The translations under genes and the position numbers were made by a program. From NCBI GenBank assembly GCA_038496445.1, contig JALMLS010000075.1:310001-374000 (forward strand): a stretch of 64,000 bases of DNA, given 5' to 3'. Every line of letters begins with the position of its first letter. Within the stretch, counting starts at the first letter, position 1. A model generated the notes under the pieces. The model was given only the letters and a program-made list of their open reading frames with translations, had not been told where the DNA came from and did no database searches. This document shows positions 31,866 through 35,495 of this stretch, in pieces. This stretch comes from Trichosphaerium sp. ATCC 40318 (taxonomy: Eukaryota; Protista; Tubulinea).

Positions 31866-33257
31866 TTATGCAGGCGCGAATATAAAACAATCATTAAGGC
31901 GTCTCGGACATAACGACACTCTACCAGGGTCAGGACAACTTTCATCTTCACAATCAACATCAACAGTGTCTTCAAGATTGCAGCATCTAAAGTTCAACTT
32001 ATAAACAAAAACAAAACCAGACGCTAGTATATGTTGTACATGTCATTGCCTGAACCTCCATCTATTTCCGCATTTGTTACCATCATATTTTCGGTGATAC
32101 TATCTACTAAAATAGTATCATCACCATTAAAACCAGTGATGATATTTTGTGTTGTAGATGTTGAAACTATTGTAAGAAAAACTCAGCAATAACTATTTGT
32201 AAAAAAAAAGGCACCAATGGTTGTTTCTGAAACAGTAATCAAATCGTCGCCATTACTACCATCAATTCTGTTTATAGATGAGCACCTAGCATTCACTATG
32301 TCATCTCCATCACCAGCTTAAATATATTTAATCAACAATACTCTACAAACCCTTTAATACCTAGAAGTGAACTAACAATAGAATTTTGGACGTCAATACA
32401 ATCATTGCCAACGCTTCCTACTATATTTCCAACTACAGACTGGGTTCCTTGATAAGCAACAATTTTGATACAGTCGTCTCCAGATTGCCCATTAAAGTTG
32501 GCCCTTTTCAAAGTTAAAAGCAAAACATGACTATTCTGGTTTGAACTTACGGTCTTGCAGGCATTAGTCCTCTTTTTTTAGCTGGAATTGTTGCTGGACT
32601 TGTTGCAGTACTCCCCTCAAATATGATATCATCATTGTCATCCCCTCCTACAATAATCGCGGTTGTGGATTGAGTGACTTTTACACAATCATTTCCATCT
32701 CCTTAACAACAAGTTAAGGCTTTGAAAGCATTTCTTTTATCAATTACCTGCGTTTGTATTACCCGTAACTGTAGCTCCATCAATGATACGAATACAATCA
32801 TTTCCGGCATTCCCAGCAATCAATCTTATATTTGCTGATGAACCTCTAACTAGTATACAGTCGTCACCACTTGTCCCAAGTATCCTATCGGCTGCACTCT
32901 CTACTATAACACAATTTCCAAAGTCGCTTACGCGCACTAAGCAACTTTGTAAGTTTAAGGCACGTTTGTCGACAATCACGTGATAATAAATTTCGTGTTT
33001 TGGAAAAGTACGCAAGTACAGTAAAAGCTATGGCAGATGTAAAAGCTTACCGACGCTGCCACTAGCCACTCCTATCATACAAGTATCAAAATCGCAAGCA
33101 TTACATGCCGCGCACTCACAATCGCAGCCACGAACATCAGGAAACGGTCTTTGAGCGTGATACACGCCAATATCTAGGTTTAAGTTATTTTAAGGATAAA
33201 TAGCTCATAAATACATAGTGTAAGGCATAAAGCGCAGATAAGCTTAGTTGTCTTCAT
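31866..33257 (-). CDS. Secreted Cys-containing RTX-like (GxxGxD) beta-roll repeat protein, copy 1
   Basis: Signal peptide MKTTKLICALCLTL. Repeats GTSGDDCI, GNAGNDCI, AGDGNDCV, GGDDNDDI, GQSGDDCI, GSVGNDCI, AGDGDDIV, GSNGDDLI, GFNGDDTI, GGSGNDI. About 7 introns; ends ...CFIFAPA*. Confidence 0.75.
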
Positions 33258-34135
33258 CTCTTTGAAAATTTTTTATAAATCTCGGAGCTAAGCCACGGTT
33301 GTGAGTCTAGAAGTTTAACGGAGTTTACGGGCTGTTTTATTGTGTTGATATTGTACAAATACTTCGCTCATTTATTTTAGTCACGAGATATAAGGTAGTT
33401 ACGAAATGTGGGTACATTAATTCGAAATACTTGAACGACTCCTTTAGTAGTAGTACTGGCTGTATTAAAAGTTTCAACCCAGTCAAAAAAATCTCGGTGA
33501 AATTAAACTACCGTTTGTAGTGCACATTTAATAAATCACGCTAATAATGGGCTATTATGGCTCACTCACCAGATTTACCGAATCGGTGCTTACTTGTTCC
33601 CACATGACTTCAATAGCCTTCCCATCTGGCTTTCTTTAGCTATTTATGGAAACTAACGAACCTGAAAGGTAAGGAGTTTGAACCTGTTGTCACGTGGATC
33701 TCACGTGCTTTAAAACATTTTAGGGTACAATTGTTGCTGATTTAAACTGAAACAGGCATTAACTATTTGACCAAGTCTTCAAAAATATCGTTTGAAGTTT
33801 AATGCCAATATGACAAAACCTCAAAAGTAGACCTTACGGATGTTATTGAAAATAAAACTCAAACCTACTTGAGTTTTCTGCTTGAATACTTAGGCTTTAG
33901 CATTTTATCAAAAGTAGCCATAGTGAAGCTCCAATGTTATGTCACGTGATACCTACCCAATAAAATTAGATTCTTTTATACCTCAGAAAGCTAGACGTTG
34001 TTACACGAAATTACAACACGCGCCCACTGGTCCTGATTCTTTCACACTCTTAACAACATCTTCTTACTCAAATACAGTTGAAGCAAACTTAAAACAAAAA
34101 AGCTATTTATTTTGTTACACCTTGTTTTGAGAACA

Positions 34136-35495
34136 TTATGCATCCGCAAATATAAAACAATCATTAAGGCGTCTCGGACATAACGACACTCTACCAGGGT
34201 CAGGACAACTTTCATCTTCACAATCAACATCAACAGTGTCTTCAAGATTGCAGCATCTAAAGTTCAACTTATAAACAAAAACAAAACCCAGACGCTAGTA
34301 TATGTTGTACATGTCATTGCCTCCACCTCCAACTATTTTCGCATCTGTTACCATCATATTTTCGGTGATACTATCTACTAAAATGGTATCATCACCTTCG
34401 CCACCATCAACTATACTTTGTGTTGTAGATGTTGAAACTATTGTAAGAAAAACTCAGCAATAACTATTTGTAAAAAAAAAAAGGTACCAATGGTTGTTTC
34501 TGAAACAGTAATCAAATCGTCACCAGCACCAGCACCAATTCTGTTTATAGATGAGCACCTAGCATTCACTATGTCATCTCCATCACTACCTTAAATATAT
34601 TTAATCAACAATACTCTACAAACCCTTTAATACCTAGAAGTGAACTAACAATAGAATTTTGGACGTCAATACAATCGTTGCCAGCCGCTCCTACTAAATT
34701 TCCAACTACAGACTGGGTTCCTTGATAAGCAACAACTTTGATACAGTCGTCTCCAGATTGCCCATTAAAGCGGCCCCTTTCAAAAGTTAAAAGCGAAACA
34801 TGGCTGTTCTGGTTTGAACTTACGCTCCTGGTGGCATTCCTGCAATACTCCCCTCAAATATGATATCATCATTGTCATCCCCTCCTACAATAATCGCGGT
34901 TGTGGATTGAGTGACTTTTACACAATCATTTCCATCTCCTTAACAACAAGTTAAGGCTTTGAAAGCATTTCTTTTATCAATTACCTGCGTTTGTATTACC
35001 CGTAACTGTAGCTCCATCAATGATACGAATACAATCATTTCCGGCATTCCCCTGAATCATTCCTATATTTGCTGATGAACCTCTAACTAGTATACAGTCG
35101 TCACCACTTGTCCCAGCTATGCTATCGGCTGCACTCTCTACTATAACACAAGTTCCAAAGTCACTTACGCTCACTTACCAACTTTGTAAGTTTAAGGCAC
35201 GTTTGTCGACAATCACGTGAATAAATTTCGTGTTTTGGAAAAGTACGCAAGTACAGTAAAAGCTATGGCAGATGTAAAAGCTTACCGACGCCAGTGCCAC
35301 TAGCCACTCCTATCATACAAGTATCAAAATCGCAAGCATTACATGCCGCGCACTCACAATCGCAGCCACGAACATCAGGAAACGGTCTTTGAGCGTGATA
35401 CACGCCAATATCTAGGTTTAAGTTATTTTAAGGATAAATAGCTCATAAATACATAGTGTAAGGCATAAAGCACAGATAAGCTTAGTTGTCTTCAT
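34136..35495 (-). CDS. Secreted RTX-like beta-roll repeat protein, copy 2 (tandem paralog)
   Basis: Same exon/intron structure and near-identical introns to copy 1; ends ...CFIFADA*. Confidence 0.75.

Follow-up and report, generated by a model that had tools for sequence, protein, structure and literature searches.

Introduction

Giant bacterial adhesins are known to bind ligands through tips made of Ca2+ β-helices of the MpAFP type. MpAFP (MpIBP) is the ice-binding adhesin of Marinomonas primoryensis, and its region IV is a Ca2+-dependent β-helical antifreeze domain. Region IV of MpAFP is built of thirteen 19–21-residue repeats with the consensus xGTGNDxuxuGGxuxGxux and binds ice via the Thr/Asx residues that occupy loop positions 3 and 5, so that the row of Ca2+ loops is the face that binds the ligand (PMC3492233). 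Here, we consider two neighbouring genes of the marine, spicule-forming amoeba Trichosphaerium sp. ATCC 40318, which are predicted to encode secreted proteins of the same fold type. They are located in tandem on the minus strand of the window, by which we mean the whole stretch of 64,000 nt that was analysed (positions 310,001 to 374,000 of contig JALMLS010000075.1, assembly GCA_038496445.1), and are called copy 1 and copy 2. The amino-acid differences between the copies were found mainly in one stripe of each repeat, next to introns and framework codons that are nearly the same, and the likely cause is selection driving a binding stripe apart, with the classical omega test being not significant.

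The proteins of the amoeba share with MpAFP region IV the repeat of 19–21 residues, one loop of the G-x-G-x-D type in each turn, after which every other residue is hydrophobic, and the predicted right-handed β-helix. However, region IV is a domain of a 1.5-MDa adhesin of the type I secretion system (T1SS), whereas the amoeba genes are eukaryotic, bear introns and encode a putative signal peptide. The loop of the amoeba repeat has one extra residue (G-T-x-G-x-D), in most rungs Cys stands directly after the motif Asp, forming a cysteine ladder, Cys-rich caps are present, and the proteins belong to a multigene family, in which the loop residues vary. The Ca2+-loop row, which in MpAFP contacts the ligand, is in the amoeba a variable stripe together with the strand before it. 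The common fold type does not imply an ice-binding function. A regular flat Thr/Asx array is absent from the amoeba proteins, loop positions 2–3 being among the most variable in the family, and ice binding is therefore not expected.

Classical RTX proteins (CyaA, serralysins, PF00353) also contain the GGxGxD Ca2+-loop motif, but in the amoeba one motif occurs per 19–21 residues instead of consecutive nonapeptides, and the context of a C-terminal T1SS signal is absent. Giant bacterial repeat adhesins (LapA-type, Campylobacter) consist of the same unit of 19–20 residues, but they are very large, Cys-free and prokaryotic. In plants, clusters of leucine-rich repeat (LRR) resistance genes are composed of tandem paralogs, whose framework is homogenised and whose variation falls on exposed positions of the repeat register. 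The amoeba genes resemble them in this pattern, the fold being a Ca2+ β-helix and not an LRR, and a part in immunity or recognition would be hypothetical. Insect antifreeze proteins, such as TmAFP of Tenebrio, are small secreted disulfide-braced β-solenoids of multigene families, but their 12-residue repeat is unrelated and has no Ca2+ loop, and the threonine array of TmAFP is regular, not variable. No account of an MpAFP-type β-helix as a spliced, secreted, Cys-braced eukaryotic multigene family was found in the literature searched. The published Trichosphaerium genome comprises 70.87 Mb with a GC content of 37.7%, and the corresponding paper mentions neither RTX, nor hemolysin, nor calcium (PMC10521059).

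Architecture and Fold of the Proteins

Both proteins begin with a signal-peptide-like sequence (MKTTKLICALCLTLYIGVYHA/Q, recognised by inspection), followed by a six-Cys cap, which is conserved in about 30 paralogs, about ten repeats and a Cys-rich tail. Each repeat comprises a G-x-x-G-x-D loop and then C/D-I-x-V. Rungs follow one another at 19–21 residues in both copies, with longer distances at inserted loops, and the columns of G, D, C and I are invariant in the family alignment. The original prediction of a secreted repeat protein with GxD turns agrees with these features: the N-terminus suggests secretion of the product, and the GxxGxD loops with their invariant Asp are of the Ca2+ type and would be putative Ca2+ sites.

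Full-length fold studies were carried out on the transcript-backed paralog P0151 as a stand-in, and copies 1 and 2 were analysed exon by exon. The full-length profile of the family (A2) matched the Protein Data Bank (PDB) entry 3P4G with E 1.8e-21 and 79.9 bits, and classical RTX proteins appeared in the same search only with E 0.03–0.9. The exon-3 profile including both window copies gave 3P4G as its sole significant match in the PDB (E 2.4e-6). An AlphaFold2 (AF2) model of P0151, obtained with 14 family sequences, had a predicted local distance difference test (pLDDT) value of 84 and a predicted template modelling score of 0.83. Its comparison with 48,161 chains placed 3P4G at the top (Z 22.9, root-mean-square deviation 2.8 Å over 237 residues, 21% identity), the next-best match and generic β-helices reaching Z 17.7 or less. 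Foldseek also returned 3P4G first, with a probability of 1.0. Exon 3 of copy 1, folded alone, showed a pLDDT of 91.5 and strands in the expected register, CILVR and CIRII after loops and ADRIL and NIRLIA before them. As modelled, the proteins are right-handed Ca2+-type β-helices of the MpAFP/MpIBP region-IV kind (PDB 3P4G).

The label of an RTX β-roll, initially given to these proteins, was replaced by the 19–21-residue Ca2+ β-helix. The classical nine-residue roll was rejected owing to one loop per 19–21 residues and the lack of a PF00353 match at threshold: in Pfam searches with single exons, three exons gave 14.8–16.5 bits against a cut-off of 23. The second turn of the repeat is R-G-S or similar, without Asp, and the consecutive nonapeptides GGxGxDxUx of the classical roll, with two Ca2+ loops in a turn of 18 residues, are absent. 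Searches with full-length paralogs gave zero Pfam matches at E<=0.01, and those with the amoeba proteins gave zero family matches in NCBIfam. Word-index protein searches with an intron-read-through open reading frame (ORF) of a paralog, P0015 and P0151 returned only the query itself.

Divergence of the Two Copies

Self-BLAST and MAFFT revealed a tandem duplication in the window, consisting of two units separated by a unique spacer of 476 nt. The gene bodies are 93–96% identical. Upstream of about 33286, the divergence between the units is ~16% (~300 aligned nt), and at neutral sites the gene body is only ~2–3% diverged, far below the upstream flank of its own unit. Comparison of these two values suggests that the body was homogenised recently, after an older duplication.

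Eight substitutions per 391 aligned bases (2.0%) were found in introns and 55 per 963 bases (5.7%) in exons (Fisher p=0.0026), which bears out the near-invariance of introns and the concentration of changes in exons noted earlier. Four of the seven introns contain no changes, five of the eight substitutions belong to intron 4 and two more to the 3' end of intron 2, and the differences in both these introns lie beside a variable exon patch. The clustering of differences is strong: for 85% of them the nearest other difference is no more than 6 nt away, compared with 44% expected from permutation, the variance/mean ratio is 3.2 against 0.93 in permuted data, and none of 5000 permutations reached either measure. 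About a dozen patches, each with 3–12 changes in 6–32 nt, are divided by identical blocks of up to 250 bases, so that variable and identical segments alternate every 10–60 nt. In this respect, the locus is a clean example of concerted evolution with divergence islands at the scale of 10–60 nt.

About 33 amino-acid differences and one loop deletion separate the two proteins. All the peptide contrasts listed in the original prediction were reproduced in the exon translations, and the indel of 12 amino acids in a loop proved to be a 36-nt in-frame gap in exon 4. Exon 2 differs between the copies by a 3-nt indel alone or, if this indel is placed otherwise, also by one adjoining substitution. Exon 8 contains three substitutions, all within the last five codons.

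Most paralogs retain K-R-G or K-K-R-G in the loop between rungs 4 and 5, which is modelled with low confidence. Judging from the sequence, the dibasic K-K-R-G loop could be a convertase-type processing site lost by copy 2.

Variable Stripe in the Repeat Register

Positions in the repeat were counted back from the motif Asp, taken as offset 0. The amino-acid differences of the pair occupy offsets 9, 8 and 6, i.e., the strand before the loop around the invariant inward Ile at offset 7, as well as loop positions 2 and 3 (offsets 4 and 3). The differences thus fall into the approximately ten residues preceding each GxD, and Asp together with the nine following residues is nearly untouched. The consensus of the family, together with the MpAFP pattern, served to define a class of x-sites (offsets 10, 9, 8, 6, 4, 3 and 1). 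Codons with an amino-acid difference between copies 1 and 2 make up 13 of 52 at x-sites and 6 of 112 among other repeat codons (p=9.5e-4), and the same bias recurs in four other independent paralog pairs (45/179 vs 39/363, p=2.5e-5). The early statement that changes occur at equal positions of the repeats holds beyond this pair. Those columns of exon 3 that differ between the copies also have a higher family-wide entropy, 2.35 bits vs 1.47 bits (p=0.008).

Since equal registers stack in a solenoid, the variable positions should line one side of the molecule. According to the register and to DSSP assignments in AF2 models, this side would be formed by the third strand, the corner preceding it and the Ca2+ loop, and the D-C-I-x-V strand with the next turn would be the conserved side. 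The clustering on one face, assumed in the original prediction, is probable: the same register in each repeat was confirmed, and the face itself was deduced from register and DSSP.

Selection and Alternative Explanations

Substitutions were counted pairwise by the Nei–Gojobori method (NG86) in codons complete within an exon, seven split codons being left out, and nonsynonymous (dN) and synonymous (dS) divergences were compared as omega. The whole genes of copies 1 and 2 gave dN 0.064, dS 0.054 and a non-significant omega of 1.18. At x-sites, dN was 0.183 and dS 0.170 (omega 1.08), and in the rest of the gene these values were 0.024 and 0.033. The x-site dN exceeds the whole-gene dS by a ratio of 1.68 (p=9e-4), and its comparison with introns and framework silent sites taken together (13/561) gave an odds ratio of 8.3 (p=2e-8). 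A finely interleaved stripe with a divergence eightfold above the neutral proxy needs selection for difference or targeted mutation. Pooled over paralog pairs, omega amounts to 1.22 for positions preceding the motif Asp and to 0.31 for those that follow. The claim of strong diversifying selection was not borne out by classical dN/dS, neither for the whole gene nor for the stripe.

Copies 1 and 2 are two tandem members of one family, each encoding a small (~330 aa), putatively secreted protein, and in our opinion it is moderately probable that the divergence of the stripe was produced by selection on a binding surface. A divergence of ~16% in the upstream flank speaks for an old duplication. 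The transcribed region would have been homogenised recently, most likely via gene conversion, after which introns and framework silent sites differ by only 2–3%, and amino-acid changes would have accumulated, or been retained, solely in one contiguous stripe per rung. This stripe would include the corner before the third strand, outward residues beside the invariant inward Ile and positions 2–3 of the Ca2+ loop, with the cysteine ladder bracing the helix and the Cys-rich C-terminal cap closing its end. The stripe may be a binding surface, by which the paralogs would have been selected to recognise different extracellular ligands, with prey or microbial surfaces or matrix as candidates. Selection for difference may have acted through fast change after homogenisation or through rejection of converted variants. 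We infer gene conversion, selection and a ligand-binding role, and selection is favoured because a conversion that erased intron differences should also have erased neutral differences in the loops. If the stripe is indeed a selected binding surface, the pair represents a natural experiment, where about 33 differences on the same scaffold can inform on how specificity is coded in this fold, and could reveal what the amoeba recognises outside the cell.

Several observations weigh against selection on a binding stripe. The x-sites have an omega of 1.08 in copies 1 and 2 and of 1.25 when five pairs are pooled (one-sided p=0.23), and unconstrained loops would give similar values. Within the patches, NG86 dS (0.17) is as high as dN, and the patches may be either old and protected or young and fast-changing. 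This high dS results mainly from codons with multiple hits: there are only 2–3 pure silent changes in the patches, with no significant excess over other sites (3/52 vs 5/170, p=0.39). Changes in copy 2 are directed towards Gly/Ala in 14 of 33 cases and towards G/C in a proportion of 31:15 (p=0.026), a lean for which lost side chains or biased repair, instead of a new specificity, could be responsible. The one-face placement of the variable residues comes from register and DSSP, not from model coordinates. Finally, two exact-pattern scans of metagenome contigs, a set from which records close to this genome may be missing, gave no transcript of copies 1 or 2.

Relaxed constraint combined with concerted evolution is the first of the alternatives. 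Here the stripe would consist of unconstrained loops drifting neutrally, the framework would be kept by purifying selection, and the gene would be homogenised periodically. An omega of the stripe close to 1 (1.08 in this pair, 0.48–4.25 in the others, and the non-significant pooled value) agrees with this explanation, as does the similarity of the NG86 silent divergence in the patches (0.17) to that of the upstream flank (~16%). However, the loop sites are just 10–60 nt away from identical introns and framework, and a conversion tract would erase the differences in both. Four of seven introns are unchanged, in contrast to as many as 12 changes per 32 nt in the patches, and the stripe dN is eightfold that of the gene's own neutral proxy (p=2e-8). 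Neutral drift of this kind is possible, but on the whole unlikely.

Introns of the family as a whole do not appear to be specially constrained, and allelic hypervariability is not seen, as follows from allelic-like pairs, where exons are less diverged than introns and omega is 0–0.29.

The original prediction also allowed for patchwise gene conversion, that is, copying of short tracts from more distant family members. Multi-base clusters, two of which span intron–exon borders (intron 2/exon 3 and intron 4/exon 5), and the many potential donors in the family speak for such a process. Nevertheless, no donor paralog was found for any of 12 patches, when either variant with 12-nt flanks was compared with other paralog loci: matches did not extend past 10–18 nt of the conserved motif. 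A whole-genome DNA search with copy 1 gave nothing above 80% identity outside the pair. Patchwise conversion from other paralogs is thus an improbable source of the patches.

Targeted mutation without selection, by local hypermutation or error-prone repair at the repeat turns, for instance, slippage or mispairing among the ten similar units of one gene that code for G-x-x-G-x-D, is quite improbable. The loops of copy 2 do move towards the motif consensus, being Gly/Ala-rich and showing 31:15 for weak-to-strong (W-to-S) changes, and intragenic repeat-to-repeat conversion could have this effect. However, the interspersed invariant motif codons (G, D, C, I) are untouched, and pure mutation would not spare them. 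Adenine-specific mutagenesis like that of diversity-generating retroelements was rejected, the bases at differing sites being A 20, C 19, T 17 and G 9.

The tandem arrangement rests on the assembly, and two alleles of one gene might have been placed side by side, in line with the 93–96% identity of the gene bodies and the absence of a separate haplotig of the locus from the assembly; this is highly improbable, since the intergenic DNA differs and is partly unalignable, with unit-specific insertions and the unique 476-nt spacer, tandem arrays are usual for the family (contigs C164 and C6), and allelic-like contig pairs with 97–99% identity show the opposite pattern, with introns more diverged.

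Gene Family and Its Relatives

At least 33 distinct gene copies with a common exon plan were found in the Trichosphaerium genome, including an array of about ten copies on contig C164, three copies on C6 and triplets on C6/C400. Family members on the contig pairs C204/C184, C6/C400 and C34/C355/C244 share 97–99% identity, their introns having diverged more than their exons, and these contigs probably represent haplotigs or segmental duplicates of very recent origin.

The array on C164 occupies ~74–103 kb and includes loci L003, L006, L017, L019, L060, L063, L065, L066 and L070. Pairwise identities of its members are mosaic, 80–95% over different spans, which suggests repeated conversion or unequal crossing-over. 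Long ORFs of paralogs on this contig were rejected as intron-poor genes, being in-frame read-throughs of introns. Distant members of the superfamily are L086 (C144), L081/L082 (C16, C7), L083 (C35), L084 (C112) and L085 (C251). Additional domains occur in distant members. One protein, P0003 (500 aa), has an N-terminal extension of 230 aa, and another, P0011 (1092 aa), contains an extensin-like Pro-rich region.

The exon-3 profile A1, constructed from 29 paralogs, gave 221 matches among 1.84 billion proteins. Several of these belong to the transcriptome MMETSP0405 of Trichosphaerium sp. ATCC 40318 (taxid 498012). The transcript proteins P0151 (334 aa) and P0015 (331 aa) map with 100% identity to paralogs on C199 and C34, each in eight blocks with short introns at places homologous to those in the models of copies 1 and 2. 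Other strong matches were giant bacterial repeat proteins with E down to 1e-51 and many matching stretches per protein. They include adhesins with a LapA-type retention module and hypothetical proteins of Campylobacter, and one protein carries the retention module NF033682. The ESM Atlas clusters closest to the amoeba proteins are those of HemolysinCabind proteins from bacteria (score 0.91).

From these matches, a bacterial origin of the repeat type is plausible, although likeness among repeats alone is no proof of lateral transfer. A wider scenario, in which a bacterial-type Ca2+ β-helix, probably acquired laterally, became a diversified repertoire of secreted recognition proteins, seems doubtful when taken as a whole. 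Conversion would keep the framework uniform, and the Ca2+-loop face would be driven apart for prey, microbial or mineral surfaces, such as calcite spicules. Such a repertoire might be a functional analogue of LRR-based variable receptors.

Gene Models and Neighbouring Features

The models of both genes were built by eye and script. Each consists of eight exons and seven introns of 41–114 nt, every intron being GT..AG, with an intact frame and the stop codon TAA. RNA evidence supports the exon plan of the family, and the plan was transferred to copies 1 and 2 by homology. The coordinates are given in Table 1.

Table 1. Features of the tandem gene pair (positions in the window; CDS, coding sequence).
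Feature	Position	Strand	Comment
Duplicated unit 1	31827..33620	(-)	Gene with ~360 nt upstream and 40 nt downstream; self-BLAST, MAFFT
Duplicated unit 2	34097..36232	(-)	Upstream part carries insertions absent from unit 1
Copy 1 gene, ATG to stop	31866..33257	(-)	CDS 999 nt, 332 aa
Copy 1 exons 1-8	33257-33215, 33173-33051, 32936-32748, 32701-32551, 32503-32361, 32316-32215, 32166-32040, 31986-31866	(-)	
Copy 2 gene, ATG to stop	34136..35495	(-)	CDS 966 nt, 321 aa
Copy 2 exons 1-8	35495-35453, 35411-35286, 35173-34985, 34938-34824, 34776-34634, 34589-34488, 34437-34311, 34256-34136	(-)	
Exon 2, copy 1	33051..33173	(-)	End of putative signal peptide and N-terminal six-Cys cap (CDCECAACNACDFDTC)
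Exon 3, copy 1	32748..32936	(-)	Three predicted solenoid rungs
Exon 3 variable patches	32884-32879; 32826-32815	(-)	R/S, L/A; R/G, L/M, A/Q
Exon 4, copy 1	32551..32701	(-)	One predicted rung and exposed loop
36-nt in-frame indel, exon 4	about 32602-32567	(-)	KKRG-containing loop absent from copy 2 (gap at about 34840)
Divergent tract, intron 4 / exon 5 start	32498..32533	(-)	5 of 8 intron substitutions
Variable patch, exon 5	32404..32424	(-)	NIVGSVG vs NLVGAAG
Variable patch, exon 6	32249..32262	(-)	RIDGSNG vs RIGAGAG
Variable patch, exon 7	32114..32145	(-)	NIITGFNG vs SIVDGGEG; 12 substitutions in 32 nt
Variable patch, exon 7	32052..32074	(-)	NAEIDGGSG vs DAKIVGGGG
Exon 8, copy 1	31866..31986	(-)	C-terminal Cys-rich cap with conserved C-x-R-R-[ILF] motif

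The cap encoded by exon 8 terminates in C-x-R-R-[ILF] in both copies (31866-31986 and 34136-34256), and the same motif is common to the Trichosphaerium paralog proteins P0151, P0015, P0017, P0026 and P0070. It may take part in sorting or processing.

The gene pair is adjoined by a minus-strand ORF of 282 aa (29981-30829) that contains numerous MORN-type Y/W-G-x-G repeats. At 31144-31236, some 600 nt downstream of copy 1, there is a cluster of short inverted repeats on GAGTCGAC, in which an 18-nt pair is 94% complementary and a 13-nt pair 92% complementary. This cluster may be a small foldback element.

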